Of a DNA stretch of 64,000 nucleotides, positions 770 through 60,016 are shown one piece after another. The translations under genes and the position numbers were made by a program. A model generated the notes under the pieces. The model had not been told where the DNA came from. It ran no database searches and saw only the letters and a list, made by a program, of their open reading frames with translations. Origin of the DNA: Leidyana gryllorum EB-2025a (taxonomy: Eukaryota > Protista > Apicomplexa); contig JBLWGC010000177.1 of assembly GCA_048772705.1 (NCBI GenBank), positions 62,001 to 126,000 of the forward strand, read 5' to 3'. Every line of letters starts with the position of its first letter. Position 1 is the first letter of the stretch.

Positions 770-3000
770 ATGCATTTACCCCCAGTTTACTACGCCTTCA
801 TCTTGGAGTATCTGACTATTGATGAATTCCCTCGATTTCGAGGAGTCTCGAGAAACTGCCGACGGGGAGTCGATCGTCATTTAATAACCCGAAAGATCAA
901 CATCGATAACGACCACGCGAATAGCCCCCAACTATTCGATCTCCGCAATTGGCCGCATATGAATGACTGGCTACGCCGCTCGGCCATTCCCCTCGAAGAG
1001 TTGACACTCCGAGAGGACATGACCTCCCACGGTAGTTGTTGGGACGTCTTTGTCACTTTGGCTCGTGTTGGACTCCCAAACTTGAAGAAACTCACAATGA
1101 CTGTGAGATTCCCAACAAGCTATGACATGACGAGTCTCCTGGAAGTCTCTCTCCCACAACTGACTTACTTCAAGTACGAAGACGCCGACCCCTTCTCGAA
1201 AAAGGTCGCGCCTCTCTGGAGACTCAGCGCGCCCAAACTCAAAAGACTGATCATGTCGGCTACGTGTCTCGACACCATTGATGCAGAACTGGCCAACCCA
1301 TACCGGCGCCAGCTCCGCGGCTTCCGCGGGGGCGAGACACGCAATAAAACCCGTTTCGTCTTTGATCGCAGTTTGATTGATGGCTATGCTGCCTTTATGT
1401 ACAATGACAGAGAACAAGACGTCAGTGTCGCTCGTTGGGACGAAGACGGTCTCACGTTCCGAGCCGAACCCCCAAATGTCCACTCGCCTCTCAGCAGAGA
1501 GGACTCACCCGACTTGCACACCAATCAAGTCTTCGGCCTGGAACTCAAGAGTCCAGAGTATTGGACCAAAGATCCCGAGCGGTGAGTTCTGCGCGGCAAT
1601 CTTCAGTTTGATATATTTTCTTCACTTTCTCCTTCAGAGTAGAAGAAACCCGCATGGGACTCATCACTTATTCGAGAAACTTCAAGTCCTCATGGCACCG
1701 TCCCATAGTCGAGGCCATTATGGACTGCAAAGGAGAATCCGTTCCTGTCACTTGGTGCAGCGGACAGCACTGGAAGTGGCGTGAACTGGCGGAGACGCAT
1801 CAAATTAAGGGTCTATTCGACTGGGTCGATGCTGTCCCGCTCGGTCACTACCTCACTGGCGATGAGGAAATCATAGAGCGGTCTGTCAGACATATGCTGT
1901 ACGTCGGAGACCAATTCCGGAGCCGCCGCTTCAAGTGGAACACTGGGTGGGAGATCGTTATCCCCAATGAGTGCGTCGAGTTTGTCGGAGACGGAGGGAT
2001 TCAAGTCTCAGAAGTCATCTCGCCCTGCCATCCAGAGATGATCCGACTGAAGGCCATCGAGTTGGGGATGCGGACGTGGAGAGCCATCGGCCAAACATCC
2101 GGCCACCCGAGACCCCAGTGGCCCGAGAACTGTTTGGTGATAGTGCGCACTCCCTGGGAATCATTGCCCAAGAATGCCGAGCAAGCAGCCTTACTGGCCA
2201 ACACTATTTCCTTCTGGAAGATCAATCGAATTGTCATTACCGGGAACATAGATAGAACTGTCCCAATATTCTGGACCTATATGGCAATGTACACAGCCAA
2301 AATTCGAGCTCATCAAGAATGCTATCTCTTCCTCCACACTGTCAGCTACTTTCATCCGCTGTGGCTGGAAGTCCTTCGCGAGATGATATCGGGCGATCTC
2401 TCCGAGCCCACCCTCCGGAATATCCTTTCTCACGTCGGGATGCCGGATTTGGAGCGTTACATTCCTCGCCCCCCGCCGCCGGCGACGGTTGAAGAGGGGG
2501 AAGAGGCTCCTGAGAACCCTCCGGATCCGGATCCACGCGACCCCACACTTTACGACAAATGGGCTGAAATTGACCATTTGGTCGCCGAGATACAGAGCCG
2601 TGGACGAAGCGTCGGCAAGTTGGAGGGCCGACAATTAGAGGAGTTCCAAAGATTCTATTCGGCCGCGGCGAGTACGATAAAAAAGGTACCCTTTCTGCAA
2701 GCCCGGGGGGCTGTCTGGCCCCAATACACAGTGGGCAAAATCTCCCTCGGGTCGGAATGGTTTATCCACAACCTTTTGCACGCCGACTCCTTCGATGAGC
2801 TTTCCGGATGGGGCATCCCCGAAGCCTTCCCGAGTTTGTTCTCCGACGAGCTGGAGGCCGGCTTCGCTTTGCCGCCTCCCCCCTCCCCCCGAGACGGAGA
2901 GAATGATCGATTAGACGTCTTTCTCGCAGAGGATCCCCCAGAGGACGGTTTCGCGCCCTTCCAGATGTTTGCTGTAACCATCACTCGCTCCGCGGGCTGA
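770..3000 (+). CDS. F-box-like family paralogue 1 (~724 aa); exons 770-1581 and 1638-3000
   Basis: N-terminal LPPVYYAFILEYLTIDEFPRFRGVSRNCR fits the F-box pattern. A 56-nt phase-2 GTGAGT...CAG intron joins ORFs 770 and 1654 in frame. C-terminal motifs are shared with paralogues 2-4. Confidence 0.75.
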
Positions 3001-3275
3001 TTTCTATTGTCACTGGAACCCTTCTCACAACACTCGTAGACGTGACCTGCCACTCTACACAGACCCTCTGACTCCCACACAGGGAGTCCACGCTGGCATG
3101 TAGAGCCGGAGCGTCCAGCCGGTGGCCACAAGCCAAAGGCTCGGCTCTCATTCTGGGCTGATGCCACCGCCACTTCCTCGCAACAGGGCGTTCCCGAATG
3201 CGGGCAGCTCAGAGATTGTCGTTGTTAGCCCGAATACGTTGAATAAGAATTTGTGCCATTGCAGGGGGAGCCGCG

Positions 3276-4920
3276 ATGCAACGGCTGGGAGCTATAATAT
3301 TGGATCAGATATTGGACTACGTGACCACTCTGGATCTTGTGTACCTGAGAGGAGTGTCCAGAGGATGGCTTGAGCACATCGACAACCATCTGGTCTCCAC
3401 CCACCTGGAAGTGGTGTTAGACAGCTCTCTGGCGATCACCGCCAGACGGAGGGCATTCGGGCTGTGGGAGCGGTTTGACGCGTGGCTTTCGCGGTCAGCC
3501 CCGGCCTTACGCCGTGTTGTCGTCAAGACAAATGGCTCCGACGCTGGCAAGCAAGTCCTCTTCAAGGTGATGGCACAAAGAGGTCTCCCGGTGTTGCAGA
3601 GTTTGTCTGTGATGTGGCTGTGCCCGCCAGTGGCCGTTTCTGAGGTGCACAGCTGGAAGCTGCCCGCCTTGGAGTATCTGGAGTTCCTCATTGTTCGCAG
3701 TGACATGACAGTGGATTTAGAGGCGCCTAAATTGGACACCATATTGATCGATGAAAGCTCGCTGCCTTTCCTCCACACAAAGCTGATGGACCCTTTCAGG
3801 AGACGCGAGCGGCCCAATCTGATTCTCTCCGAGGAACCACTGGTCTTCAACGCCAGATTGCACAACGGCTGGGCTCCCTTGTCGGCACTGAACCGCGAGG
3901 TTCGTGGGATCCTCACCGGCTGGGAAAAAGTCCCTCAGTTGAACCAAGGACAGAGTAAGATGCTGGTGCCGTGTCGGCTATGCTGCCCACTTGTCTCAAG
4001 CTGCCAGAGACTTCCGGAGGCTGATGTGTCTGAGGAATCGGTTTTTGAGACAGCGGTGGTCGCCGTGGGTTCTGGAAGCTATGCGTAGTGCTGATGTCGT
4101 AGGACCCCTGGCGGACAGCGAATCCATCATGATCACTCCTGCGTGGTGGGAATGTGCTGACACGGGTGACATCTCGGAGGTACCGTCGTGCATCCGCCGT
4201 CTGCCGTTGATCCCGTATGGCCACCAGCAGTCGTGGAAGAACGCGGACGGGGGCGCGCTGGCGGGTGACCATCCAGCGTCCTTCCAGGAAGGTCTGCTGA
4301 CGAGAGAGCATACGGCATCGTTCGCACTCTGCTCGCAGCGATCGACGATGGACCTTTTCCGGAATGCCAATATCACTCGGATTTTGTTGATCAGAGGGTT
4401 TTCGAGTAGCGAGGAGATTCTCTGGACTTACATTCTGTGTCTCCGTTTACGCCAAGTTGGTCATATTGTTCGAATTTCAATGGCTTGTTGTGGATTCTTT
4501 CCCCGGATATGGAGGAAACTGATACTCGAGATGAGCTCCGGACGGTACAGTGAAGACACCTGGTACGAGGTGCTGAATTACTTGACAATCAAACCATTTG
4601 GGCTGGAAGCTATCGATGCTGAGTACCCCCGCTTGACTGCTCTCGGCAGAGCGTCTCTGAGTCGACGGCAGGGAGTGGGGCCCCGGTGCGGCAACAAACT
4701 TTTCCAGTCGTGGTACAGAGACATGTTGCAGAGCACCTTACCCTCATCTGTAAAGGCAACGGATGTGTATGGGGAGATTGGGGACATAAGGCCGGACTCC
4801 CCCTGGTGGATTTGGAGGATGGCGAGCGGCGACAGAGCGACGTTGTCGAAATGGGGAGTCCCGGATCACCTGCCGTGTCCAGTGGAGGATTGGGAGTGTT
4901 TGTGTGATGTTTGGCCATAA
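3276..4920 (+). CDS. F-box-like family paralogue 2 (~532 aa); exons 3276-3954 and 4001-4920
   Basis: F-box-like LGAIILDQILDYVTTLDLVYLRGVSRGWLEHID. A 46-nt GTAAGA...AAG intron restores frame. Shared motifs WLSRSA, LILEMSSG, IGDI and WGVP. Confidence 0.72.
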
Positions 4921-4978
4921 AAGTTGTTGGTGGATGTGTTAAATTTGCATTGAGATCGATCTTTGTAATTAGAAATCT

Positions 4979-6962
4979 ATGGCATCATTCCTCGCGTTAT
5001 GCCAAATTGTGGACTTTCTGTACCCAAATGAGCTCGTGCGATTCCGACGATTGTCTCGGCGGGCGTATAACTTTGTTGATAACATGTCACGGTCGTCTCA
5101 TGTTGTTATCAGTACGGCTAACAATGTTGCGGGAAGATGGACGAAAATGACAAGATGGTCGAGTTTGATAATGTGGTTGAAGCGTTCCGCCTCGGTGGCG
5201 GAAATATTGGATCTCGAGGGGGCTGGAGATGATGAGTGTCGGGGTCTCTGGTCTGCTTTTAGCATAATGTGTTCCGAAGGAATGCCACGTCTGCGAACCT
5301 TGCGACTACGGTTCGACCTCTCTCCGGTGTCATACGAGTCTCGAATTGAGTGCACTTTACCACGACTCAAATATTTGGAGCTCAACAGCAATAGGCAGCC
5401 ATGTGTACACGCTGATTGTGTATTATTGAGCCTCGATGCCGCGGAACTGGAAACTGTCAAGCTGAGTTTGGGGGAGTTGCATCATGTTGACACCCAATTA
5501 ATCAACGACTTCCGGGATGAGCTCTTGTCTCAAAGGGATTCAGGGATGTGGAAAGCCACAATACTCGTGAACCAAAGGTTCCCTCGAGGCTGGACTGAGC
5601 TCAAACTGCCCTTCTTCTTCTCAGACATTATACACGCATTAGAAAAGGAAGGAATCAAAACCAAGAATCTGCCCCTACCATTCTGGCCCGACCATGTTGA
5701 TCCTGACATCCCAATCCGTCATTGGCAGTGCCGTGAAAGGTGAGCCGCTTTCAACACCTCCCTCCCCTCAGCCAACCCTGTCATGTGGCCTCTTTGTTTC
5801 CAACAGAGACATCAAACAAGTACAATTTTATGTGTTCGAGTACTCTCGAAGATTGTGGCAATCTCATTGTCCTTCAGTGATCCAAGCTATCCACGACCAT
5901 TGCGACAAAATCTCAATTCCACAGAGGCCACAGTGTCGGCCTCAGCCCTGGCTGCACTTTGCAACTTCTGGCGACCTTTCGAATCTTCCTCCATGGCTCA
6001 AAACGCTACCGGTGGTATCGCACTCCCACCAGCCGCACTTTGACTGGACCAAATGTGTCCGATGGACGAGCCATCACGGTCGCCATTTGAACATTGAGCA
6101 TTCTCAAGTGCAAACCTTCATTGGTGTTATGAGCTTCGCTCCCACTGGTCTGCATCAGTGGCCTGACTTTGAGGCCTTGAGCGATCTGCGAGCGATCGAG
6201 ATGAGTTCGAAGGCTTGGCGGCTATTGTCCGAGTGTCTACACGGCAAACGTATCAATTGGCCTCCGTCAACTAGCAGTATTATTCTCAAGGGTTCAGCAA
6301 CCCAATTCCCCACTGACGGAGTGAGCGCAATCGAGTTTCTGACTTCAATTCGTCTATGCCGAATCAATCATCTGGTCCTAACTGGCGACTTGGCTCACTC
6401 CTGGACAATATTCTGGGTATATTTGATCGCCTATACGCTCCACAGGCAAGACAATGTCACACTTCGACTCACACAACACACCGTACGGTACTTCCCGCGT
6501 GTGTGGAGACGGCTGCTCTTGGAGCTGGCCTCTGGCGACTTCACCCAAGACACTTTACGCTCTGTCCTGATCTACTGTGGCGTAAAGGAGGTGGAAGACT
6601 GGTTGCCGATGACCAGATCTATGGACGAATTGGAGAGCCACTGGCAAAGTTTGGGACTTTTTCTGAGGGCCACTCACGTAGAATCACGAGATGTGGGCGC
6701 GATATCATCTGACGATTACCGAGGCGAGTTTGAGGACTGGTACAAGCAGCTCCTCCAAGAGACGTTGCCAGATGTACTGGAAAAGTGCCAAATGAGCTCG
6801 TCTTCAGAAGTGTTGGAAATTGGCAGGATTTCCTTGACCTCGACTTGGTATCTGCAGCGACTGTTTTCCGGTGCTCTGAGTGAACTCGCGGCCTGGGGAA
6901 TCCCCCTTACACTCCCAACTGTTCTTCCTTTGTCGTATATTGAGAAGCAAGAAGGTGTGTAA
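4979..6962 (+). CDS. F-box-like family paralogue 3 (~638 aa); exons 4979-5739 and 5807-6962
   Basis: Degenerate F-box LALCQIVDFLYPNELVRFRRLSRR. A 67-nt phase-2 GTGAGC...CAG intron lies at the same protein position as in paralogue 1. Shared C-terminal motifs. Confidence 0.72.
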
Positions 6963-7249
6963 TTAGTAAGTACCCTCCCTTTACTGCCTATGATGTCCAG
7001 ATCACCGGCGTATTGGACCGTAATCTACCGATAATGCGCGACCATCTATGAATTGGTGTTCTGTTTGTTGTGTAATGCGATTGTTTGATGAAAAGGTTTC
7101 TGTTTGTTTGTAAGGTGTTCCATACATAAGCACCACCCGATTAACCTATTCCGTCTCGGTAACCACAGTGGTGATTCAGTGATCCAACTCGCTTCAATTC
7201 GATATTCTTGACATCCAGAGCTCTCACAAGCACAACTCCAGCTTCAGCA

Positions 7250-10200
7250 ATGCCGACCCGACAGACTATCTTCCGTTCCGGCAGAACGCTGCCGCTCCAC
7301 AGCAGCGTTATAATCGATTTCATCGAACAGGAAGTCCAACACATCAACGAAGAAGGACTTCCCCGCCCAGACGACCCGTTTGGGCTCGGTGACATAGTGA
7401 CAGGGAAGCGCAACAGCTTTGCTAACCGCGTTGACCTGTCACTAGACATTTTCGACGCGTTCGACGCCAACCATCCCCAAATCCCTATAGCGCAGCTAGT
7501 AGCGGACCAAAGGGCGGCGCGTCGACCGGTCTTGGACCCAGATCGTCCAGAGATCTCGAAAGAGATACTTCGCCTGGACGAACTGTGGCAGATGGATCTC
7601 AACATGTCAGGAGAACCTTCACCCGAACTCCTGACAAGTGAGTCCAGCAAAGAAGCAGAAAACGATGGCGACGAAGATGTCACGAAAGGTGGTTGCGCAA
7701 TGGTTCTGAAATCTGTGGGAAAACTCCGCATACTCAAACAGCCATTCATACGCTGGTTTGTGCACAGCAAACGCGTGCAGACAAGTTCGTGCTCAGACAA
7801 TCTGGGTACATCAAGTGCTGATTTACACAAAACGCTCATTCCAGACATGACTTCTTCCGTCATGCCAAACCAGATCAATCCGACGCTCACCACTCCTGAG
7901 CCCCTTTTAGCCCGCCCAAAAGCCAGCAAGCACCACAGCCCGCTCCAGAAGCTGCTTACGCCTTCGAAATGGGTTTGGTCACGGCTCAGATCTCACAAGC
8001 GTCATCGTTCCGCACGTGGGGACAGCACGGCCTCGTCAAATCCGCAGCAAACTCCCCAGCCTACTACAGTCACGGTTGATCCGGCCAAGAATACTTTGTC
8101 ACCAGCCAAGGAGGGTACAGACACGGCATTAGGTACAGCTGCGGTTGCATCGCGATCAGCTCATTCCGTTTCGCGAAAAGCTTCGTCCGCTGAAGCAGCC
8201 GACGCTTCGGCCTCGGACGTCTCCGTCCCTGACGCCCAAGGCGCTTCTGCCTCTGACGTCTCTGACAACGAGTCTGTCCCGGCCATTACCGTCGCCGAGC
8301 AGCCACGAGCCGAGCCCTCTGCTACCTCGCAGGTGTCTGATTCTGAGCCGTGTTCACCCAGAGAAGATGCTGTTGCTGAACGAATGCGGGAGTATGCTGA
8401 TGTTGTGGCTGAAATTCCCGAAGCTCGATATCTGGCCAGGGAGTTGGCGGAATCTGGTCCCCGAGTTAAGTTAGATCATAAACCCTTCAAGTACCGCGGG
8501 CCTTACGAAGAGCCCCGATTCTACACACCCGCAATGGGTTCCTGCCCGTCCCCCCGAGACGAAGACGACACTTTATATGACAGGCCTCGATTTGATTATA
8601 AGGAGAAATACCTCGCCAGATTGATTGAACGGCGTACTGCTGGTCCGGGCGACAGCCCAGAGATCTTTGAGCGACCCTTTGTACCGACCCGAGGGATCCA
8701 AGGTCCCGATATCCTAAGTTCGGGCGGAGTTCTGCAACCGTTTCCGAGAGGGGCGACCCCGGGTAGCTTCCCCGAGCTCACACTTGTTACTCCCTATTGG
8801 TTCCGCGACGTTGTCAATTTCCGCCGCCAGGATCCTCGGCTATTCGCCGGGATGACGCAGGGCGAGTTTGCGCAATTGTACCCCGCCTTGAAGGCCGAGC
8901 TCTTTCCGGGAATGATCGTTGAAGCTTTCCCCGAGACCCTGGCATTGAGTTCCTGCGGGTCCGGCATTCGATTGAAGCGCGGGGTTTCCCCCTTCCCAGG
9001 CATTATTCCCCGCCGCAAGGTGGCTCGAGCCTTCCATAGACTTCCTGTCAAGTTGGTCACCCACATCTGCGAGTTCCTTCTGCCCGAACACCTGCCCCGT
9101 TTGCGAGGTGTTTCCAAGGAGTGGCGGACGATTATCGATCAATCGGTCGCGAATGACCGCATTGTATGCGATAGTCTAAATAACCTGCTCCGCCAGTGGA
9201 AGATCTGGTCGCATTGGAACACCCAAATATTGTGGAGTCAACGCTCTGCTGCCTTGGCCACGGAGGCCAGGTTCAGAACGCACCCACTGGTGGCATCGTA
9301 TCTCCAGGAACTCATTGACTTTCACGCTGAAGGAGGTGCGGATGTGCTCGAAAAGCTCGTTGTGACCGGGGCTATCGGCTCCGAAGTCAAATCTGACACA
9401 TCGATGAGCGCGCTCAAAACGCTTATTATCCGATACTTCCGCCCTCTTAGACAGACCACTGCGCCCTGGAAGTTCAAAATGATCTGCCCGAACCTTCAAA
9501 CCATAGTGTTCCCGGGGGCCGACTTGCGCAACATTGACATGGCTCTCGTGAAACCGTTCCAGAAACGTGAGGTTCTCGAGTTCATCAACAGGCCACTGAG
9601 ACGCCACATTATGGATCCGATGGTGACTGTCCGTACCATTTACATGCTGGTAGACAGGGATCTCGGCGGACCGGGAAAGCCCGACTACACACTCTTACAG
9701 GCGACTTTCCCCTCGAACGCCACGTGGAACGAACCCATATGTCTACCCCCATCTGAGTGGAAGGATCAGCGGATGCTCTACGGCACATTGACCCCGCCAA
9801 AGGATCTTTTCGGGTCCGGAGCCGAGGAACAGTTGAAGAACAAATCATTGACTATCGATGAGAAATACGAAGTCGTCAAGGAGTGGGGCGCCGAGAAGTG
9901 GATCGAGTGGCCCTCCAAACTCACCCACGTCGTACCCTTCCTCCGGAAAAACACGGAGAGAATGAAAGCATTGTTCCCTCTGAGCACTCTGAAAGCCATC
10001 CCCGAAGTCCTCGTCCCCGTCAAAGTCTTCGATACGTGGCAGGTGCCCAGCAAGACCTGGAGAGAGCAGTTCAGCTTCACCACCGTCAAGAAAGTCCCAA
10101 GCTGGGTGTCGACTTTGCCCGTGGCGCCCATCAAATTGCTTCCCGTTGGACAGTGCGTTGCGGAGTACACAGAAAGGCCGTACATGTCCACCCGCTGGGC

Positions 10201-11293
10201 CGATGAACTGTACTTTAGCGATGCCACTGTGGGTGGCCTCGAAATACTCGACAGAGTCTTCGACATGACCAAACTCATCTCCATCGACGTCACCATGGAA
10301 ACCTGGGAAAGACTCAGATGTCTCAACATTGAGAAGAACGGCCGCAACACACCCTTCCTGCCAAATGTTCAGTACAAAACCCTTCGTATAACCACAGTGG
10401 ATACTGTACCGGCCACCCCTCAGCACGTCTTCAAAGTCGTCAACCTGATGAGAGAAATGAAGATCAACCAAATCCTCCTCACCGCCGCTCCCGTCTCCTC
10501 CATCCACTGGTTCTGGTTGTATGTGACTCTCTTCCTTTACAACTGGCACAACCAGAAAGACTCGCTGTCGCCCGAGTTCGACCGCTTACTCGACCTGGCG
10601 CGCGACTATCAAGTGGAGGCAGGACTCTGCGCCCCCGTCAAGTCCAACCCCGTCTATACCAGGTGGCAGAAACTGCACCGGAAATTCCAGACATACTATC
10701 ATGGCGCCGAGTATCACGAGACATTGAAACGTGAAGCCTTCCACGCTGCCAGAGAGGCTCATCGGCGTACCTCAAAACACTATTGCCATCTCACCATCCG
10801 TGGCACCTATTACTGGACGGAACTGTGGCGACAACCCATATTCGAAATGATCTGCGGCGTATTCAGTTCTCACACCATGTCCAAGATTATCAGCACAATG
10901 GAGGTCGACGAAATCGCCGGTCAAAACTTCCTTGACTATCACTGCCATGAGAAAATCCTCAGAATTGCCCATCTCACTGGAATGGCCTTCGGCCACAGAA
11001 ACGTTGAAGAAGGCCAACACATTGGTGCGCGGTGCTCAGAAAATACCGAAGAATGGGATCGCTACCTTCTCACTCTTCGCAATGTATCCCACCCCATATT
11101 CTTCCCCACCAATGCGTCCAAGCGTCTAAGCCGGGAATTCGGCCGTGACAATTATGCCATCGTCATTGGTGAAATCAGCGCCTATCATTCCTGGTACTAC
11201 AGGAGAATCACGGATCCTGACACCAAAGGACGTGAGCTCAACGATTGGAACGTTCCTGTCATCCTCCCCTCGGTCCTCCCTGATATGCTCTAA
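7250..11293 (+). CDS. F-box-like family paralogue 4 (~1347 aa) with a ~600-aa N-terminal extension
   Basis: One long ORF with first ATG at 7250. Internal F-box LPVKLVTHICEFLLPEHLPRLRGVSKEWRTIID starts at 9041. Shared motifs WSQRSA, FWLY, IFEMICG, IGEIS and WNVPVILP. Confidence 0.75.
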   Translation: MPTRQTIFRSGRTLPLHSSVIIDFIEQEVQHINEEGLPRPDDPFGLGDIVTGKRNSFANRVDLSLDIFDAFDANHPQIPIAQLVADQRAARRPVLDPDRPEISKEILRLDELWQMDLNMSGEPSPELLTSESSKEAENDGDEDVTKGGCAMVLKSVGKLRILKQPFIRWFVHSKRVQTSSCSDNLGTSSADLHKTLIPDMTSSVMPNQINPTLTTPEPLLARPKASKHHSPLQKLLTPSKWVWSRLRSHKRHRSARGDSTASSNPQQTPQPTTVTVDPAKNTLSPAKEGTDTALGTAAVASRSAHSVSRKASSAEAADASASDVSVPDAQGASASDVSDNESVPAITVAEQPRAEPSATSQVSDSEPCSPREDAVAERMREYADVVAEIPEARYLARELAESGPRVKLDHKPFKYRGPYEEPRFYTPAMGSCPSPRDEDDTLYDRPRFDYKEKYLARLIERRTAGPGDSPEIFERPFVPTRGIQGPDILSSGGVLQPFPRGATPGSFPELTLVTPYWFRDVVNFRRQDPRLFAGMTQGEFAQLYPALKAELFPGMIVEAFPETLALSSCGSGIRLKRGVSPFPGIIPRRKVARAFHRLPVKLVTHICEFLLPEHLPRLRGVSKEWRTIIDQSVANDRIVCDSLNNLLRQWKIWSHWNTQILWSQRSAALATEARFRTHPLVASYLQELIDFHAEGGADVLEKLVVTGAIGSEVKSDTSMSALKTLIIRYFRPLRQTTAPWKFKMICPNLQTIVFPGADLRNIDMALVKPFQKREVLEFINRPLRRHIMDPMVTVRTIYMLVDRDLGGPGKPDYTLLQATFPSNATWNEPICLPPSEWKDQRMLYGTLTPPKDLFGSGAEEQLKNKSLTIDEKYEVVKEWGAEKWIEWPSKLTHVVPFLRKNTERMKALFPLSTLKAIPEVLVPVKVFDTWQVPSKTWREQFSFTTVKKVPSWVSTLPVAPIKLLPVGQCVAEYTERPYMSTRWADELYFSDATVGGLEILDRVFDMTKLISIDVTMETWERLRCLNIEKNGRNTPFLPNVQYKTLRITTVDTVPATPQHVFKVVNLMREMKINQILLTAAPVSSIHWFWLYVTLFLYNWHNQKDSLSPEFDRLLDLARDYQVEAGLCAPVKSNPVYTRWQKLHRKFQTYYHGAEYHETLKREAFHAAREAHRRTSKHYCHLTIRGTYYWTELWRQPIFEMICGVFSSHTMSKIISTMEVDEIAGQNFLDYHCHEKILRIAHLTGMAFGHRNVEEGQHIGARCSENTEEWDRYLLTLRNVSHPIFFPTNASKRLSREFGRDNYAIVIGEISAYHSWYYRRITDPDTKGRELNDWNVPVILPSVLPDML

Positions 11294-18356: not shown

Positions 18357-20604
18357 TCAGAAACCCAGGCAATCATCACTACACATGTACTTCTTCGCAG
18401 GATCATCAGTACAGAATCTGCTGGACAACCAGCAAGCGTAGGCACATGTGTGCCAGACGTTTGTATTGAGGGTGACGGGTGCTTGGAACTTGAGTTCGCT
18501 CACGGACGCTGTAGCCACATCCACATCAGCCCGCATGATCTGATCGTCTGTGAAACGGGGATCGAGCTTAGCCATGTCAGCCGTGGGGATCTGCCGAATA
18601 GGTTTGAACAGTTTGACACCGCGCCCCGAAAACGTACCATGATAAAATTGGGATATGTGGCGTAGGGCCCATCCCTGCCAGAGCCATGGATGGCCATTGA
18701 GGTGCGAGCATCACAGCGTGGAAGGCCCGATCTGTTGGCGCAGGGGAACGCCGGGATGAGATCCAACTCTGTCATCATGAAGCGAACGTTGACACCGAGT
18801 TCAATCATTCGATCCAAGGCAACTTGATTGATTCCATGAGAGGGAGCAAAGGCAATTGCTTGAATTTTAACACCCAACGGTGCGTATTTCTCGGCAAACC
18901 TCACGCCGTAAACTTGTGTCATACCGCCGCCCAACGAGTGGCCGGTGATAGTGAGAGTGGTCTTGTCAGGTTCACATTCGCCTGTGCCGAAGATTTTGTT
19001 ATCTAAATAAGATTGAATTATGGGCAACGATAGATCAGCGAGTTGTTCGTATCCCCGGTGACCATAAGCGTCTTCAGACTGGCCGCTGATTGGCTGCAGT
19101 TGAGGGTTGAAATTGACGTTCCACTCGTAGCCACCTTTGGTCCCCCTTTGAGTCAGCAGGAAGTCGCAGGTGTACTTGGAGGAGCGAAGGGGGGCGTCAG
19201 TGGGGCGGTTTCGGCCGTCCTGAACGTATGGATAGACCATATCGCCTTTGCGACTCAAAATGGTCAGCGGGAGGGCCTCTTTGCCGGCGGCTCCGAGCTC
19301 TGGAGAGGCTGCAGACGAGGGAGATGGGGGGGAGTTACGGCGGCGGTGGTGACTTACCCTCTTCGCGGGCCCAAACCTCCAAGACTCTGTCCCAGCCAGG
19401 GACCATTTGAAGGGGGTTTGGGAATGTATCACAGAGGCCCTGTTGCAGAGTCCACTTGGTCTGGATGTTCATCGCCCAGTTCAGAAACATGTAAGTCGGA
19501 CCTTCGGCTTCGACGGTCTCAGGTTTGACGCTCCCATCCTCTGCAATTGCTTCGGATGGCGGCAAAAGAACCAAGTCCACAGGCTCAGTCGCCACGCCAT
19601 CCGGATACAACTTTTCACATTCATTCCAGTTTGGAGTTGGAGACACGGGTGCAGTTGCACAGTCCGGCGGGATCCCGGCCGAACAGCCCAGAACTGAAGA
19701 GAAAAGGAACGATTAGGAGAGAGACGTGCGGGGGGGAGACGCGGGAGGAGATGTCGGAGGAGGAGACACCGAACACACACTGCACACGCGGGGCCAAAAG
19801 CTGAGTCAAACACTTACAGGCGCCAATGATGCTGATGAGACCACACCCGGTCCATTCGGGATCAAAATCGTTTTCCAAAGACACATCAGCTGCCTCACAT
19901 GCGGCAGCGCCCACATCCTCCATGGGGGAGCGGATCCAAAGCGTCAATTTGCCGCTTTCTTGTGTGTTGTCTTCGACATAAGTGGTACCGAGTGCCCTCA
20001 AAAGGAGGCGACCCATCATTTTGGAGGTCACGAACCCGGAGAGGAGGTCAGGGATTCTGGCCTCCGGATCCATAGCTTCCATGAAGGGTATTTCGTCCCT
20101 CGGACGTTCATAAAGATCGCAAACACCTGAATCCACATCACACTCAGACTCCAGTGGGGGGGTTGCGACGTCGCGTATAATGTTTTTGATTATGTCAGAA
20201 ACGGTCTCGTTATAGGCCAAGTCTTTCAGCGCATAGTGAGCAATCAGTCGGTGGCCGGTCGGCGTGTCCAACAACCTCTCGACAGCGCCGCTCAACAACT
20301 TGAGTTTTTGGGATGTCGTAGTCGGACCGCCGCCTTGACCGCCGGCTGTGCTTCGAATTGCCTGAGCAGCGTTGTTTAGGGAGGGCAGCGCGTTCATAGC
20401 CTCTCTCAACTCATTTGTGTCGAGCCCGAGTGAAGAGGCTAACGCTCCCAGCATGCCCAGGGAGCATAGTCGCATCGGGGGGTCCGATGCAAAGAAGGAT
20501 TGCGGAACCCCCTCATACACAGGATAAGGTAGTTGACTGGTAAAGTCGGATGCTGTAGCCACTGATACTATGGCAACCTTTAGTAGAGGTTGAAGGAACC
20601 TCAT
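18357..20604 (-). CDS. Secreted class-3 (alpha/beta hydrolase) lipase-like protein, multi-exon
   Basis: Signal-peptide-like MRFLQPLLKVAIVSVATA. Oxyanion-region QRGT, GHRGY, ITGHSLGGG nucleophile elbow, DLIPAFP, and a candidate catalytic His in VWHTCAY. Confidence 0.78.
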
Positions 20605-20640
20605 CGCGCAGAAATCAAACAAGGTGAACCAAAAAAAGAA

Positions 20641-23600
20641 CTACACTGACCACCACAGCACAAAGGCTACGCCTCTTTGATACCATAGTGTTGGATCCTC
20701 CTTGTCGTCGATCACAAAGTCGGCCGTCGTAATACATTCTCTGCACAATCAAAGTGTTAAGGGGGGGTGTGCTGTGCCACAAACACTTACTGTCGCGCAC
20801 GAGTCAGGAACACCGGTAGCTTAATAACGTTCTTCTTGCGTCTGCTCTCACTCGTCCGCGGCCGGGCCCACTTGAGTCTCGTCGGCGGTAATCGGCTCAT
20901 CTCGGAATCGGCCAAGTGTAACATCTTCGACTTGCTGTCATATGTGGCTCCGCACACGTACATTCCAGTCAGCAAGTAGGATTGGTTGTCAATCTGCAAC
21001 AAGAAGATGCGGGAGAGGTGGGCACCACCACACTTTACTGCTCACCTCAGTGTTTCCAATGTCAAGCGACATCACCAGATCGTCTACGGGCCACTTGTAT
21101 ATCTGAGCCACCTTCTGCTGGGTGGCTGATAGGTAGGCCTTGGGGTTCGAGAGTCCACCCGGCCACAGACACTTGACACTGAGATCTTCAATCTTTCCTG
21201 TGGGCAGCATACTGCTCAGATCCTGCAGCACCGGAGCCCTAACAACTTCGTGGGCGGCCTCCACATCGATCGGCATTGCTTGAGCACCGCCTGAATAGTA
21301 TCTGGAAATCGCCACCAACTGTTCAGCTCTCCGGTTGAGATCCAACATCCATTCGTCCAAGTTACGAAGATTGGCCACTCCACCATACGGTTGAGACTTC
21401 CACTGGTCGGGTACCTCACCCGCGACCACTTTCTGGGCGATCTCTCGGATGATGTTTGTGAACTTGGTTTGACCGCTCGCCACCCCTCTCAAGGCGACTA
21501 GATGTTCGGAAATGTCAGCCCACATTCTGCGAAGCAAAGAATAAGTGGACACGAAATGTTCCCAACTTACAATCGATAGCTGCGCACTTCGGTGTCGAAG
21601 AATCTGAACAGAGGATCTTCGCTGCCCTCTGAAGCCACTGGTTGGAGGTTAGTCGCATCAGCGGGAAGAGATGTCCGCAGGAGATCAATTTTGCTCAGAA
21701 TGTCAGCCGCGTGGCCACCACCCAACGAACTCGAGAGACGGCTCAACGCGCGATCCGGAGGAGTGGGGGCCCCAGCAGACTTGACCCCCATTGAGATACT
21801 CGCTTGGGAGCGCAGAATATCTCCCTCTGTACCCACACCGACAAAGGAGCTCACAGGCAGAAGATCTTTGAGCTCTTCGGCACTGCGATTATTGAGTACC
21901 TGCCAGTCTGTCAGCATTCCCAGAGCAGTGTCAGCCTGCAGCAGTCGGTCGGCGTGAGCCGCCAGTCCAATCCATGTTGGGTGGTCGTTGGCGGTACCGA
22001 GCTTTCGCACCCATTCGACATACTGATCAATCGACTTGTCCAAAGGAGGAGCATTGAGGGGAGGTCCTCCGCCTGTCGCAGCCACCAAAGGCGCGTTTTC
22101 GTCAAACATTCTCGGACTGATCAATTTGTCCACGAAGCTTCTCAGGACACGACGGTCAATATCATTGTCGAGACGGCCTCCATACATGACGTCTCTCAAG
22201 AGCGTCTGGAGTGCGAGCCATGGAATCTTGCTCGGGTCCATGCTGCCGGTGCTGGTGAGCCATTCGTCCACCTCTTCCAAGCTGCAGAGCAGATCGGCGT
22301 CACTGAACTCGTAGGCTTTGGTCCATCCGATGGGGGCGAATCGGCGTCTCTCCAGGACGACAGCGTGGAGGAAGGCGACGTAGAAGTAGAGACGGTTCCT
22401 CAGAATGGTCGGGGGTCTTTCGGTTCTCGGAGGTATGATGAAACTGGTGAGACTGCGTTCCAGGGAGGCACGGAGACCGACCGGAGGCTCAAAGACGAAT
22501 TTATAGGCGAGACGCAGAAGATTGGCGGGGACTTTGTCTTTGAACTCCATTGTCAAGAAGATTCGGAACTTGTCGTGGTGTTTGAACTTGAACATTGTCT
22601 TCTCGAGGTTCTGCAGCCATTTAGTACTGGTGAGATGGACGTTCTTCAACAGGACCCAAGTACCAACGCGAGACGCCGATTGGATTGCCTTATCGGCCGC
22701 CAGATACCCTTCCTCGCTACCCATTGCAATTGATGTCAGTTGACGACCGGAAGAACCCGCAACGGCCACAACTCTGCCCGACGGATCGAAACCAGGAGCC
22801 GAGACCAGAATGACTGGGACCGAACTGGAGATTGAGGGACTGTTCAACAAACTCGTCAGCAGATCTTGACTCAGAATGGGGACCTCCAAGAACGAAGGGC
22901 CCATAATGACCGATACCACCCGATCCAATGCTGCAGACAATCTGTCGGCTCTCAGACATTTGACCAACAAAGCCATTCGCAGCGCCGACATCATATCCAT
23001 AGACATTTTCTGTAAGGGTTCCTTGAGCGCTTGGAAGTGAGGCAGAGACAAAAAGTGGTCGACATCGCTGCCCAGCTTTCCGGGGACGCCCTTCTCCTCG
23101 GGACGATCGCTGTTGAGGAACTCCAGCCAGAAAGCCTTGTTGGTCTGCATGTGTTGTACCAACATATCGAAACACCGAAGACTGGACGCCAGCGTGGCCA
23201 ACCCACGCTTCTGGTCCAGACGAAGGGTGCCATCCAGCAGAGGAGTGAACGAGTCGGCCGTCACTGTCGCCAGGACACCGCCCCGCGTGGGGTGGCCGTC
23301 ACGGGCATCGAGTGAGGTCGAGTGTCCCAAGTTGACGAGAAGCTTTCCTTGGAGGAGCACATCCAGTTCCATCGACCGAAGACTGATTTTCGTCATACTC
23401 TCGAAACGAATACGAGCAAACTGCAAAGCGAGAATGGCTTTGTCTTTGTGCAGATGAGAGAGTGTGCAGCGATCATAGAAGGCTTTGAAGAAGGAGGCTA
23501 ACAATATCTCTGCCCGGGCGGCAAAATCGTCCGCTCTGACTGATGACAATGCAGCTTTATTGTTGAGTGTCTCCTTGAAGATACTCTCGAAGAAACGGAG

Positions 23601-26600
23601 ATCGTAGTGATATAAGAAGTACAATGACGACAAATGCTCCAGCGTGGTGTATAGACGGGCCGCTGCATCGGCCAGTGGTATATACATTGCCGTAGTCTTC
23701 TCGACCTCAGCCATAATCTCGTCAGCTCGAGCGGCCTCTCGGTTCACTTCTTCCGCTTGTTTCTTCAGGTTCTCCAAAGTATTGACCACTCTCTCGTCAT
23801 CCAATATATTCCCGCTAACATTGGCCAGCGAGTTGAGCAGAGCGTCTTCCAATTCACGGATCTTTACTCTGAACTCTCCCTGCAATTTGAGCACATCTCT
23901 CCGTTTCTTATCCACATCCGGCCTCTCCGACCTCAACACCATATTGAGACACTGCGGGAGAAGAATGATGAGAGAGGGAGAAAGAGGGAGAGGGAGAGAG
24001 AGTTACCTGATTACGCAGACTCGCCGGCGTTGTGGTGTAATTGATAAGAGTGACTCGCGAACAGAGATCGGGAGTGAATTGAACTGTGGGATCTCTGGTG
24101 ACGAGGAAGATGACAAAGGTGGGGGAAAAGTCAATTTCCTGTTCTCCAACAGTAATCAGTATACGGCCACCCGATCGGTGAGTTTCCTGATTGAGGACAT
24201 TGTTCAATATGGTATCCATCTCCTCAACGTCCTGAACCAACAACGCAGTACCGAATCGCAGAGCCGATTCGAGTTGTTTGACGAATCCAGAGTCAGAGAA
24301 GCTCGTCTTGACGATCTTCTTGTCAGCAAAGAGGTTCAGAATGAACTCTGTCGCCTGGCCCGAAGGGTCAATGATCAATGGGTAACGGATGAAACGTCGT
24401 AGAATAACGGTATTCTCCATCGACAAATCGTCGGGCGGCAGTCCGTTTGCCAACCACGAGTATCTCTCAGCCGGTTTCGAGAGGTACTCTGTCATACTCA
24501 AATCGTGCCGATATTGGATTTGCGACCCGTCCAATACTGAGTGCCATTCGGCAATCAATTTCCTGAAAAGAGAGGAGAGAAGATCAAAACGCTGACGCCG
24601 TACGGATGCACTCACTCTCGTTCGCCCTGCTCGAAGAATCCCATATAGGCAGAGAACGCTGAAGCCAAAATGTTGTCTCCCAACTCAGTGGTGAGACTTT
24701 CCTTGCTCTCATTGCAACTGTCGGCCCAACGCTTTTGTTCAGATGTCAGGTTCTTCAGCATCATTCGAGACGTCTCGACTTTCCGTTTCACAGCCTCCAT
24801 TTCCCATTTGATCTGTTGCTCCTCGGCGATAAGTTGGGCGTATTCGGCCTGGAGCAGAGCCAACTTCTCCTCGAGTGTTGCGATCAAAGTTTTGGTGCGC
24901 TCGTACTTGAGCTGGTTCTGCTGCAAAGCGGCCTCCAACTGAGTGATCTGTTGCCGTAGTGGATCCACTTTCAACACAATCTCAGCGCACTTGCACGACG
25001 AGTTGACCCAAAGTGACAGAGGTCCAGCTGCTTTCGAAGCCTTGTCAATCTTACTGTACTCCCAATCGTTGCTCTCGAGATACCTCCGTTTCAGGGTGTT
25101 CACGGTCGCTTGCGACAACACCTCCGGCTTTGTGGCATCAAAGTTAAGAATCCTGTTGATGAAATCACTACGCAGCGTCTTGCGAACCTCGTCCCAAGTC
25201 GCCACCTTGTCACCACTGTTGGTCAACAATACCACCACCGCCTCACAAACCATCTTCACCGACGCCGGCGGAGAAGACATACCTCTCAACTCGTCCAAAG
25301 CTCTGCAAAGATAGAAATGATTATAGACGCGCGATCAGAGAGTGATCACATCATTAGACGACGCAACAAGACACTCAGAGCGGGTGTGTGTTTCCCCGTC
25401 GCCCGTCGGACACACACTCGACGAGTGCACTCACGGCTCGGGGACTTACTTTCTGGGAATACTGGAGACGGACTCTTTGGCTTCGAGTAACAGCGGCTGC
25501 ACTTCGTTCAGCTCATTCTGGACCTCAGTCTTTTGGGCACTGATCTTTGTCTCCTGAACATTCAACACATCAGCCAATGCCTCGGCATCCTTCTTCTTTT
25601 CCTCAGCCTCCGCCTTCTGCGCCACCATAGCCTCCATTTTGGCGCTCGACAGCTTCTGTTTCTCGGCCAACTCGGCCTCTTTGATGGCGAGACTGGCTTG
25701 GAGCTCAGCAACTTGAGTTTCAGTCTCAGCCAATTTGGTTAGACCAACGGTGAGATGGTGAGTCGTATCGGACAGCTCGGCTCTCTTCTCAGTGACAAAG
25801 GCCAGAAGGTGTTTGATGAAGTCCAAGAAGTCTCGTGGGGCCACAAAGTTCCGTTTCTTTCCCTGTCTTGCTAGCCATTCGTTGATCTGCCCAACAGCGC
25901 TGTGGCATCCGACCATCGCTTGCGCCAGCAGATCTCGGCGTTCATCTTCCTCGGCTTCCCGCGCCCCGGCAGCGTATGCCTCCTGCGGGATGGGGAAGGC
26001 TTCTGTGAACTCGCGAGCGACGTGCAGCAGAGCCTCCTCGGGCCAGTCGCCGAACCAGTCGATGACGCAACGGTTGAAGAGGGCAGGCGATGTGGCTTGA
26101 CGGTTATAAAAGTCCGGATTCGCCGGATTCATTGTGAAGACAATGTGGAGGTTACGTTGGACTTGTTTGGTGAATCGGTTGAAGAGTTCTCCCTCATCCA
26201 TCTCGCCTCCGAACGCGGCGCGGCATTCACTGATCAGTTGAGTGTATTCGTCTTGTTCAAAGAGGCCAGGAACTTCACCAGCCGCAAGGAGGGCGTTCAT
26301 ACGTTCTAAGAAAGCGGGTCCCAAAACGTTGGACTCGTCGAAGATGAAAGTGATCTTCTCCTCACGGACACCGGCTCTCTTCATGACGCTGCGCAGATCG
26401 TTCTCAAAGGCGACGGTGTCATAGTTCCGTCCCGCTTTGATCTGGAAAACCGATAGGCCATTGAGCCAAGCCACAAATTTACTCAAAATAGTCTTTCCCG
26501 CGCCTGACACACCCACGAGGAGTAAGTGACCCAGGGGTTGCCGAAGGACACGATCAATTCTCAATATATGTTGGAGACACTGATCAAAGAGGACCAATTT

Positions 26601-29600
26601 GACACTGACTTCCTCTTCGTAGAACACATTGAGTTTACTCTTAATGACTGAACGCAACTTGTCGATGGGTGCCTCAGTGTAAGTGCCATTGAGAATGGTG
26701 GTGAAGAGGATGGGACGTTGAACGTCCTCACTGCTGACCATTCCAGCGAAGTGACTCAAGAAGATCTCATCCAATGTCGAGTCAGTCCATTCTTTGTGAA
26801 TGTCTTCAACCAAACGGTCTCTGAAGATTCGTTGGGCCTCATGGATAGCGAGACGCACGAGCTCGACGGGGCTCAGAGCGTCAGAGTCGCTACGATCTTT
26901 GACCGCCTCGTTGATAGCCACCTTCCATCTCGAGAGCTCACGAGGCGAGTAGATGTAATGCGGTTGCATATCGACAGTGAATTGTTCTTGACTCGCCATA
27001 TAAAACTCAACCATTGCTTCCGTCAGTGGTGACGCCAATGATCTCATCGATCCACGAAGCATTGCCCTGTTGAAGGTACCATAAATCTTCTTGAGAGAGT
27101 CTGGGCCAGGGAAGTCCACAAACAGAATTGGAGCTCCACGAAGGAATCGATCTGACATCGGATGTCGGCCAGCGTCAGTGGGTGGGTTACACGCGCCAGC
27201 GAATTGTATGCGTTCGAGTGTGACCTTCTCCCACACACCTGGCTGTGTCATCTTCCAGAAACAGCCACTCGCAACCATTTGCCGAACGAAACTGATGACC
27301 CTTTGGGTTCCGTATCGATCGGGAGACGGCAAGTTGATCTCATCACAGAAGAGGATCAGCCATTTCCCGGGTGTGTTGGGCCTCAACACAACTCCGCCCG
27401 CCGTCTTGACGTACTCACAATAATGATTGAACGTCTTGAGCAACATATCGGGTGTGGTTCCACTGCTAAAGTTGAGAGAACAGATCTCAAACTCTGCTTG
27501 ATGAGCCTTCAATGTACTGAGCAATGTCATAGTCTTGCCACTACCCGGAGGTCCACACAGGATGAACGGCCGTCTCTCCTGGAGATAAGTTCCAATGAGG
27601 TCGCGATGAGACCGCGTATCAGACGTCTCAATAACCAAAGTAGCTTCTTCGACCTGTCTCGGATCAATCTCAGTAGTGGGGACGGTGTCTCTCCATTTCT
27701 CCCACTCGCCAGAGTGGAGCACGACAGAGTAATCCAGCATTGTCCACCCTTCTCCGCTCCCTGCCTTTCCGCTGTCACCAGCCAAGTCGCTTGGCAACGT
27801 CACTGACGTCTCCGTGGCAAAGAGGTTACCCACGTCTCTGGCGAACACTGTCCGTTCATTCAGTGGCATAGAACCTCCGAATGCCCAGACAACCGCGACC
27901 ACCAGCGATCGGCAAATCACCTTCTCCACAACAGCTTCGGGTAGCGACTCCTCAGTGTGTCCCTGAGATTTCTCTTCCTGCAGGTCGATTAGCTCAATGG
28001 CTTTGCGTTCTAAACAGCTGAACAACGCTTCCACCACTCTGACCCGTGTGAATGTCATAATGTGGAAATGATCCTCGGCCAACTCCAGAGCTTTCATGAT
28101 AACACCGTTAGGATCAAAGTATTGCTCCAATACATTGGCAACGTGACCGCGAATGCGCATCGCAGCCTCAGACGTTCTGTAGACGTCTTGACCAAAGTTG
28201 ACTCGAGTGGTCTTCGCAGCTGAGGCTCGAGCCGGAGCTGTTTGCTGTTGAAGCCGGATGGCTGCTGACATGTTGAGCTCCTCGGCATTGGCTTCCTGCA
28301 AGATGACTTGGAGATTGGAGTTTCCACGTTCCAAACCTCCCTCTTTGAGCATAGTCTCGCCTCTGGCGAGTTGCACTCTGTGACACGGGTTTGAGGAGAA
28401 ACGTTGTTCGCTCTGTACTTACGTGGACGCCAGTCGTTTCATTTCCTCTGCAACATCTGGAGGTGAGTCGGTCTTGCCGCTGAGCTCGGCCAAATGATGT
28501 TTGAAGATACTGGTGAGCGACAGGACGGATTCAGACATCCAAACCATACCACAGCGACTCACAGTCGCCAGAGTGGCTGACTTGAGTGTGTCGACTTCGA
28601 ACACCAGGCGTACATTGTTCGGCACCTGGAATCTTTCACCGTTTGGAAGAGTCAACAATTTGTTGTCATCGAGCACAGAGTTGAGGTTCTCTGCCCACTC
28701 GGGATCAACGTCGCCATCAAAGATAATCCAATGACGGAACCGAATCTTTGGACTCGATGCATTGACAATCTTCCTCAGCGTACTGGTGAAGACACCATCG
28801 GTCCACTCCAATGTGGTTGGATCGAGTCTGCCGTACAATTGCTCCTTTGATAACGCTTTGGGATCAATGACATAGCTGACACCTTTGACGCCATCGACCC
28901 GCTCCATAGCGGCCAACAACACTGTCCAGGCAGATGTCTTGCCTGTGGACGATGCAGTGATGATGATAGACAGTGGAGAGATGTGATGTAGTCCTTACCG
29001 ACACCTGTGGGCCCAACGAGCATAACACCGTGATTGAGTTTCTGGATTTGATAGAGTTGTAACACTTTCTGTTTCCAGTTGATCTCGGGCTCGTAGTGAC
29101 GTTGACTGCACAGATTGGTGATCTCCGCTTCCAGAATGGCCTCCTCCACGGGCAATGTGGTTGCGCCTGGGAACACCGATGTCAACAGCGACTGCATACG
29201 AGATACATCTTTCTGGACCAACTTGGGCACCAACGAGTCACAGATTGACCGAATGACGATGGTGCGCTCAGCATCTTCAATGGGGCTGAAGGGGTGAGGA
29301 ATGATATGAAAGGGATCGTCGATGTTGGCACTCACTGTTCATCCTTTTGGGCACCTTGTTTCCTCTTGAGTTGACCTGCAGCACTGAGTACAGATTTGAG
29401 AGCTCGGAGGCCAAAGTCGTAGTGAGGTTGACGTGATAGTTGTTGGAAACAGAGGTCGAACAAGGCGACCACCTTGGTGGCCAACTTGTTCGCTGTCTCG
29501 AATCCTTGACTGTAGAGCATAACTTCTGTAATGAGAGACTTATCGGGAACGATCATCGCAAACTCTCGGAAGAGCTGTTTGAGGTTATCGGGCAGATTGC

Positions 29601-37306: not shown

Positions 37307-38392
37307 TCAAGCTGTTGACATGTACTTCTCCTTAAGGTGCAACTTAAGCTTATTCCAGTCGGCATCAAAGCCGCGGATGCCCTCAGCGAGTTTGTCGCAT
37401 GCCATCTTAGAGGCGTTCATCTCCCAGCGGAATTTCTCCTCAGTGAGGTTGAGTTTCTCCATAGTGCACAATTTCTCTGCATCGCCTGCGGTCAATTTCT
37501 GTACCAATTTGGCCGCGGGCATATCGGCCAACTCCTTCAGAAGCTTGGGAGACACAGTTAAATTGTCGCAGCCGGCGAGTTCGAGAATCTCGCCAACATT
37601 CCGGAACGAAGCTCCCATGACCACGGTCTTGTACCCGTGTTTCTTAAAGTAGTAGTAGATCTCGCGAACGGACTTGACGCCGGGGTCTTCCGAAGCCTCA
37701 AAGTCCTTTCCCTCAGCAGCCTTGTACCAGTCCAGAATTCTGCCGACAAACGGAGAAATCAGATAAGCACCGGCCTCGGCAGCTGCAATCGCCTGGTACA
37801 GGGAGAAAATCAGAGTCAGGTTGCAGTTGATGCCTTGGGCCTGCAGTTCCTTGGCAGCCTGACATCCTTCCCACGTCGAGGCCAACTTGATCAAAAGACG
37901 GCTGTGGTCGATGCCCTTCGCCTTGAACAGCTCCACAATGCGCTTGGCTCTGTCAATGGACCCCTGTTTGTCGAAAGACAACGAGGCGTCGACCTCGATC
38001 GAGACAACTCCAGGGACGATTTCCAGAATCTTAGCGCCAAAGGTGGTCAACAGCTGGTCACAGATCTCGGGAATCAACACATCCGGGTCAGTGGAGTTGT
38101 TAGTCGCCTTGCGAGAAGCCTCGACCGCCTCGTCCACAACAGACTCGTACGCGGGATTCTTCACAACTTGGAGGATCAATGACGGGTTAGTAGTAGCGTC
38201 CACGGGCTGGAAGGTCTTGATGGCCTCGTAGTCGCCGGTGTCGGCGACAACTTTGGTAATCTTCTTGAGCTCGTCCAAGGCGCTCACTTGTTGCTTCTTA
38301 GTGGCCGGATCCTCGACTGCATCGTTGGTGGCGGTAGCGGAGGAGGCGGGGCGTTTGGCAGGGGAAGCAACAGTCGGCTGCTGATCGGTCAT
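37307..38392 (-). CDS. TAL: Transaldolase, intronless
   Basis: VVADTGD, DATTNPSLI, catalytic-Lys motif LIKLASTWEG, CNLTLIFS, ISPFVGRILDWY and MGASFRN. Confidence 0.96.
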   Translation of the reverse strand: MTDQQPTVASPAKRPASSATATNDAVEDPATKKQQVSALDELKKITKVVADTGDYEAIKTFQPVDATTNPSLILQVVKNPAYESVVDEAVEASRKATNNSTDPDVLIPEICDQLLTTFGAKILEIVPGVVSIEVDASLSFDKQGSIDRAKRIVELFKAKGIDHSRLLIKLASTWEGCQAAKELQAQGINCNLTLIFSLYQAIAAAEAGAYLISPFVGRILDWYKAAEGKDFEASEDPGVKSVREIYYYFKKHGYKTVVMGASFRNVGEILELAGCDNLTVSPKLLKELADMPAAKLVQKLTAGDAEKLCTMEKLNLTEEKFRWEMNASKMACDKLAEGIRGFDADWNKLKLHLKEKYMSTA

Positions 38393-38457: not shown

Positions 38458-41732
<3,275 letters not shown>

Positions 41733-53944: not shown

Positions 53945-54025
53945 TTGAGATCTAAGATAACATACGGTGATACTGACCCATGTGTACGGTGTCATTTTGG
54001 AAAAATAGTTTTTTGGGTTATACCA

Positions 54026-55848: not shown

Positions 55849-55911
55849 GAACCAATAGACCTACCACTTTTTTGGGTGTGTGGCTTTTTAGGAGATCGCT
55901 ATGTGTTTGAT

Positions 55912-59987: not shown

Positions 59988-60016
59988 GTCACCTTTTTCT
60001 CATCAGATTTGGAGGC

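Follow-up and report, generated by a model that had tools for sequence, protein, structure and literature searches.

What are the four consecutive genes at 770–11293 on the plus strand of a 64,000-nucleotide stretch of the Leidyana gryllorum EB-2025a assembly (GCA_048772705.1, contig JBLWGC010000177.1, positions 62,001 to 126,000 of the forward strand; the whole stretch is called the window here), and what might proteins so dissimilar from one another do in common? The explanation that fits best, to which we assign a probability of about 0.7, is that they belong to a lineage-restricted family of candidate substrate receptors of SKP1–cullin–F-box (SCF) ligases, with an FBXL-like design and an additional orphan domain. 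In the proposed architecture, an N-terminal F-box would dock on the single SKP1 of the organism, and hence on cullin-RING ligase cores. An irregular solenoid resembling leucine-rich repeats (LRRs) would follow the F-box, and then a conserved α/β C-domain of ~380 residues, solenoid and C-domain jointly forming the putative substrate-recognition part. In most members, a conserved phase-2 intron appears to part the F-box/LRR module (N-module) from the orphan domain (C-module).

The four genes, referred to as g1 to g4, were delineated from reading frames and splice signals, and each spliced model makes one open frame. Their parts are the following:

770–1581 and 1638–3000, plus strand: g1, with the N-module in exon 1 and the orphan C-module in exon 2 (from the open reading frame (ORF), the donor site and the open spliced frame)
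770–1581, plus strand: g1 exon 1, F-box at about 800–889, then an LRR-like region
1582–1637, plus strand: putative g1 intron, 56 nt, phase 2, GTGAGT..CAG (from the sequence, the open spliced frame and the family-wide position and phase)
1638–3000, plus strand: g1 exon 2, orphan C-module
3276–3954, plus strand: g2 exon 1, N-module, F-box at 3297–3389
3955–4000, plus strand: candidate g2 intron, 46 nt, phase 1, donor GTAAGA (the best candidate, not a unique one)
4001–4920, plus strand: g2 exon 2, C-module minus about 80–100 middle residues (alignment gaps; positions 100–183 of the hidden Markov model missing)
4979–5739, plus strand: g3 exon 1, N-module, F-box at 4994–5089
5740–5806, plus strand: putative g3 intron, 67 nt, phase 2, GTGAGC..CAG
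5807–6962, plus strand: g3 exon 2, orphan C-module, the copy used for the C-module fold
7250–11293, first ATG to stop, plus strand: g4, intronless, 1347 aa, a single ORF with an internal F-box at 9032–9142

The joined spliced models were used only for the open-frame check and for comparing the four genes mutually and with retrieved relatives; searches, fold predictions and complex predictions were run exon by exon, without joined spliced proteins.

The four genes are paralogous far beyond chance. Pairwise BLASTP alignments of their proteins are colinear at 22–29% identity, with E-values ranging from 2.7e-39 (g1 with g3) to about 1e-5. A first-pass annotation of the window had described four plus-strand genes with colinear motifs at very low identity, and had held that non-significant pairwise alignments would refute the relationship; the alignments are significant throughout (E 1e-5 to 1e-39), and the motifs that it quoted (the F-box start, W..RSA, G.P.L..L, L.AP.L and D..L..PF) are conserved alignment columns. 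Its intron claims also hold as to position and phase, with phase-2 introns at the same place in g1 and g3 and a phase-1 intron in g2. The longest of the four, g4, is organized as a long N-terminal extension, a conserved pre-F-box block, the F-box, an LRR-like region and a C-module with a helical insert. Its first ~500 residues are poorly conserved in the two g4-like orthologues described below (P0008 and the L046 gene). The pre-F-box block (window 8750–9030, residues about 515–600 of g4), with the pattern WF..VV...DPR.FA.M, is kept in both of these orthologues and has no Pfam match.

The module boundary is marked by the same putative splice junction across much of the family. A phase-2 donor, G|GT(G/A)AG, closes the N-module frame in paralogues from six other arrays (junctions L062–L067), and a pyrimidine-rich ..AG lies 36–70 nt downstream, at the position of the g1 and g3 introns. 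The boundary intron is missing in g4 and in a few other members, such as the paralogue L005 on contig C35. The phase-1 intron of g2 is the least certain of the intron calls: its donor, GTAAGA at 3955, comes closest to the family consensus, but several alternative GT..AG pairs would keep the frame as well. Retention of the boundary intron would bring an immediate TGA or TAA after the N-module (window 1582–1585 and 5740–5743; L062–L067), so that, given the phase and the donor consensus, it would leave an F-box/LRR-only product.

The F-box can be recognized in the sequence of all four genes. The earlier reading of their N-termini as F-boxes is upheld by Pfam PF00646, which matches each protein in register (g1, E 0.035 over residues 11–40; g2, 0.0027; g3, 0.0056) and exceeds the cut-off of 20.5 bits in g4 (E 4.5e-5, 23.6 bits). 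The F-boxes of g1–g3 score 14.5–18 bits in the Pfam protein scan, in the same register as g4, and a six-frame scan of the genome places those of g2 (21.4 bits), g3 and g4 (30.7 bits) over the cut-off. Among the 26 N-modules of a genome-wide family alignment (A4), 16 match PF00646 at E<=0.01 (best 3.5e-6), and the consensus of this alignment, L...IW.QIL.FLPL.EL.R.AG.SK, is a textbook F-box pattern. When the A4 profile was run against PDB sequences, two chains of FBXO22 together with FBXL3 led the matches, all weak (E 0.02 and up), with KDM2A and SKP2 lower down among LRR proteins, also weak. The LRR signal is sub-threshold in Pfam (LRR_4 in g3, E 0.026), and one family member matches LRR_At5g56370. 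No Pfam match to FBA, FBD, FTH or Kelch was obtained at E<=1 in the four proteins.

The fold predicted for the N-module is FBXL-like. The AlphaFold2 (AF2) model of the g3 copy, with a predicted local distance difference test score (pLDDT) of 84, opens with three short helices and continues in strand/helix repeats; the F-box helices (residues 4–11, 16–22 and 27–35) have pLDDT values of 87–96. Its best structural match by VIA-align is FBXL3 (4i6j_B; Z 8.0, root-mean-square deviation 4.3, 159 residues aligned), in an alignment of model residues 1–199 with residues 38–228 of the chain that starts at the F-box. The next matches are Dia2, FBXL5, FBXL17, TIR1, Rad7, FBXL2 and SKP2, and the alignments to FBXL solenoids have Z-scores of 5.5–8. 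Recurrent F-box/LRR matches of the predicted model, aligned from the F-box onward, agree with the sequence evidence.

The genome encodes SCF partners. It contains a single SKP1 gene (PF01466, 92 bits) with three exons on the minus strand (L045, G000:C230:900022-903165), and at least two cullin genes, on contigs C202 and C104. For complex prediction, SKP1 was supplied as three separate exon chains together with g3 residues 1–115. The interaction prediction score from aligned errors (ipSAE) had a median of 0.48 (runs 0.48, 0.42 and 0.71), the best control reaching 0.05, with a partner pLDDT of at least 64 and a contact agreement between runs of at least 77%; this score is compatible with docking and is not proof of it. 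The tool grades this result as weak support for the SKP1 interface that the first-pass annotation had called for. The ..DFSPEEE.. segment of this SKP1 retains its proline, a residue that undergoes hydroxylation and glycosylation in the Skp1 of Toxoplasma and Dictyostelium.

The second half of these proteins, the C-module of ~380 residues, folds confidently in prediction and lacks recognizable relatives. AF2, run on a 42-sequence alignment (A5), models the g3 copy with a pLDDT of 91.2 and a predicted template modelling score of 0.90, with strands and helices in alternation and then a helical part. No match was found in Pfam at E<=1, nor between the C-module profile and PDB sequences at E<=5. 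A Foldseek search of the PDB returned no clear match (best E 0.012, with LRR proteins mixed with TIM-barrel enzymes). VIA-align against 48,161 representative chains gave a best Z of 5.2, under the tool's noise level of 7–8, and a second look at the Foldseek candidates gave a best Z of 4.8. In the ESM Atlas, the search by shape yielded template modelling scores of at most 0.37, with a plant F-box/FBD/LRR cluster at the top, and the search by features yielded scores of at most 0.79. By hhalign, the C-module has no relation to the N-module. The model describes an orphan α/β repeat domain, perhaps a continuation of the solenoid; it does not demonstrate a new fold.

Do these elements amount to an SCF receptor? 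The adaptor role put forward in the first-pass annotation is probably right: PF00646 matches in register, the N-module has an FBXL-like fold, the genome carries a single SKP1 and cullins, and the predicted SKP1 complex lends its weak support. Several points weigh on the other side. Three of the four F-boxes in the window fall under the Pfam gathering threshold when scored individually, the best Foldseek E-value of the N-module is weak (0.056), and the Z of 8.0 to FBXL3 reaches only what the tool calls a ‘middling’ level. The grade of the complex test has been given above; the supply of SKP1 as three exon chains departs from the tool's calibration, and the pass may stem from solved SKP1/F-box complexes that the model had memorized. 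The C-domain has no recognizable interaction fold, and the introns are putative, called from sequence and family conservation. The analysis establishes paralogy, F-box homology, the FBXL-like fold of the N-module, the size and distribution of the family, and orthology with synteny; docking on SKP1, ubiquitylation through SCF and the recognition of targets by the C-domain are inferred.

In an unlikely alternative, the F-box-like fold works outside SCF ligases. SKP1 would then be used as it is by yeast Ctf13 and Rcy1, or the F-box would be only a structural cap, and the C-domain would have an unrelated, possibly enzymatic activity. The nearest C-module neighbours, none of them significant, are partial β/α barrels (radical SAM enzymes, aldo-keto reductases and GH18); a near-invariant E..SG..T motif, described below, could be active-site-like; SKP1 docking is weakly supported; and F-box proteins with roles independent of SCF are documented in PMC11802861. 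However, the structural matches of the C-module all have Z <= 5.2, under noise, and no Pfam or PDB sequence match accompanies them. The F-box is kept in about 70 copies whose other patches vary, which is the pattern expected of adaptors.

The family is large. Profiles of both modules were searched against the assembly from which the window comes (237 contigs, 15.5 Mb), where at least 72 N-module and at least 90 C-module matches lie on more than 25 contigs, mostly in head-to-tail tandem arrays. The family has at least about 70 copies. On the same contig, further N-modules are found at about 43, 46, 48.5, 57 and 59 kb, upstream of the window genes, which occupy 62.8–73.3 kb in contig coordinates; the four genes are therefore the last of a longer array, the 3′ end of 10–11 genes. 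The four-gene local expansion of the first-pass annotation has to be abandoned in favour of this 10–11 gene array and about 70 copies on more than 25 contigs. A genome-wide scan with PF00646 gave 48 matches over the cut-off, about 43 of them within the arrays of this family and about five elsewhere.

Young, near-identical arrays stand at the ends of contigs C205, C36, C186, C204, C47, C2, C133, C173, C9, C82 and C102. TTTAGGG telomere repeats were not found, other types such as TTAGGG not having been searched; the 14 contig ends examined carry no telomere repeat, and two of them finish in near-identical sequence. The simpler reading is that these positions are probably assembly breaks caused by repeats, with a subtelomeric location as the alternative.

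The gene content of the assembly bears on the identity of the organism. Alveolins (IMCp) give at least 15 matches, and AP2 domains number at least four. The genome therefore points to an alveolate, and very likely to an apicomplexan broadly defined, and is consistent with the ‘alveolate’ guess made earlier. No light-harvesting proteins were found in it. A fungal origin, prompted by the short introns of 46–67 nt, was considered and set aside, as the AP2 and alveolin matches point to an alveolate; fungal Zn2Cys6 domains gave no matches in the genome, a blank that is not informative.

How widespread is the family beyond this genome, and how old is the array? An exhaustive HMMER search of 1.84 billion representative proteins with a C-module profile (A3) returned 15 matches, namely 14 convincing ones (E<=1e-10) and a marginal TPR protein. 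Ten of the 15 were looked up, the TPR protein and nine of the 14; all nine are singletons without a name, taken from sequencing runs assembled by Logan; the source run, looked up for seven relatives, was in every case ERR10900103, ERR10900105 or SRR28734874. With only 14 convincing relatives in so large a collection, the family is lineage-specific, as proposed in the first-pass annotation, and not a known, widespread one. No paper tying F-box expansions to gregarines was found in the literature, nor one that cites any of these three runs.

Some of these relatives are orthologues of individual genes of the window. In a quick maximum-likelihood tree, the orthologue pairs have support of 99–100 by the Shimodaira–Hasegawa-like approximate likelihood-ratio test (SH-aLRT). 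The orthologue of g1 is P0002 (43% identity over 406 aa, E 3e-103), and an N exon orthologous to g1 exon 1 is present in L068 (36% identity); that of g3 is P0001 (46–47% identity); and g4 has P0008 (25% over 878 aa, E 2e-73) and the L046 gene (29% over 506 aa). The relative keeps the same gene order, with an upstream gene (g0), g1, g3 and then g4. The syntenic orthologues of g1, g3 and g4 argue that this array is old, as had been claimed for the locus, that it predates the split from the relative, and that the three have been kept as distinct genes. Among the window genes, g1, g3 and g4 are conserved orthologues and not fast-turnover copies, whereas other arrays of the family are recent. The odd member is g2, which has no counterpart in the syntenic array of the relative and whose sister in the tree is the intronless C35 paralogue L005 (C35:361-363 kb). 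It also has a displaced intron and a shortened C-module; g2 may have been inserted later, or the copy may be degenerating.

The recent arrays form a well-supported young clade (ten sampled rows) on several other contigs, with 92–97% identity within an array. Pairwise ratios of nonsynonymous to synonymous substitution (dN/dS) among the recent copies range from 0.26 to 1.3 and are mostly below 1. Within this clade, the mean column entropy is 0.61 in the F-box and 0.12 in the core C-motif, the near-invariant E..SG..T, and rises to 1.3–1.8 in short patches. This pattern fits a conserved docking end combined with variable recognition surfaces, as a description of the sequences and not a test of selection. 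Intact ORFs, the dN/dS values of recent copies (0.26–1.3), one-to-one orthologues in conserved order and the constancy of the F-box and core C-motif in the young clade suggest that the genes are functional.

A large, tandemly amplified and fast-diversifying family with hypervariable patches, in an organism that appears to be a parasite-type alveolate, could also consist of exported effectors that hijack a host SCF, like the F-box effectors deployed by bacterial endoparasites (PMC3417536). We regard this as very unlikely: the F-box starts a few residues after the start codon, which leaves no room for a signal peptide; the N-terminus of g4 has no evident hydrophobic leader, judged by eye; and the organism retains its own SKP1 and cullins. 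That the arrays are DNA in decay or associated with repeats, such as pseudogenes or the cargo of transposons, with no working genes is hardly credible, for although many contig ends are probably breaks of the assembly at tandem repeats, a few copies have in-frame stops and g2 has lost part of its C-module, there are intact ORFs of up to 1372 codons, conserved splice sites, dN/dS values mostly below 1 and orthologues at 25–47% identity in the same gene order in another organism, and a Pfam scan found no transposon domains.

As a family of candidate SCF receptors, these proteins can be set beside known systems. They share with the FBXL type (human FBXL3, FBXL5, FBXL17 and SKP2, yeast Dia2, plant TIR1/COI1 and Toxoplasma TgFBXL2) an N-terminal F-box that leads directly into a curved, here predicted, α/β solenoid; SKP1 docking is expected in both, and it is among these proteins that the N-module finds its best structural matches. 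They differ from it in that the repeats are barely detected by the Pfam LRR models and the second half is an orphan domain. Plants (F-box/FBD/LRR, FBA and Kelch classes) and nematodes (FTH/FBA2) have F-box expansions of comparable character, with tandem arrays, a conserved F-box, variable recognition regions, and old and young members side by side. In contrast to these classes, FBA, FBD, FTH and Kelch domains are not detected here, the C-domain is unrelated by sequence, and the host is an alveolate with a 15.5-Mb genome. For Toxoplasma, PMC11166348 reports 18 putative F-box proteins, of which only two are L-type, compared with about 70 of one type here. Apicomplexan FBXO1 (Toxoplasma, Plasmodium) is, as described in PMC10006092 and PMC11802861, an SKP1-binding F-box protein encoded by a single conserved gene, against about 70 copies in the present family; no similarity between the two was seen beyond the F-box, and none was sought.

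The remainder of the window holds genes of other kinds. At about 19600–35300, on the minus strand, lies a gene of several exons for a dynein heavy chain, with matches to DHC_N1, DHC_N2, AAA_6/7/8/9, AAA_lid_11 and Dynein_heavy on successive ORFs. Two further genes were assigned:

37310–38392, minus strand: transaldolase
53945–55426, plus strand: GDPD-family gene

Three long plus-strand ORFs, at 39537–41729 (731 aa), 55876–57246 (457 aa) and 59984–62419 (812 aa), have no Pfam match at E<=1e-5.

The roles in defence or stage-specific degradation suggested in the first-pass annotation are speculation. A fuller proposal, tentative and in our judgement unlikely as a whole, takes the C-domain for a new substrate-recognition module. 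In this gregarine-like apicomplexan, the family would be a system of intracellular recognition that diversifies, for example against viruses or retroelements, or for rapid stage- or host-dependent remodelling of the proteome; by retaining the intron, cells could alternate between full receptors and truncated decoys made of the F-box/LRR module only.

About 70 copies, occupying roughly 1% of a 15.5-Mb genome, would represent an unusual investment in candidate SCF receptors for apicomplexans, in which few F-box proteins have been reported so far. The old syntenic orthologues of the window and the young amplified arrays elsewhere offer a natural contrast for studying how a receptor family evolves. 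The family joins a conserved F-box to a domain that folds confidently in prediction and is without relatives in annotated proteomes, and so provides a defined set of candidates in which to look for new degradation targets and a new recognition fold, in a parasite lineage that is poorly sampled.

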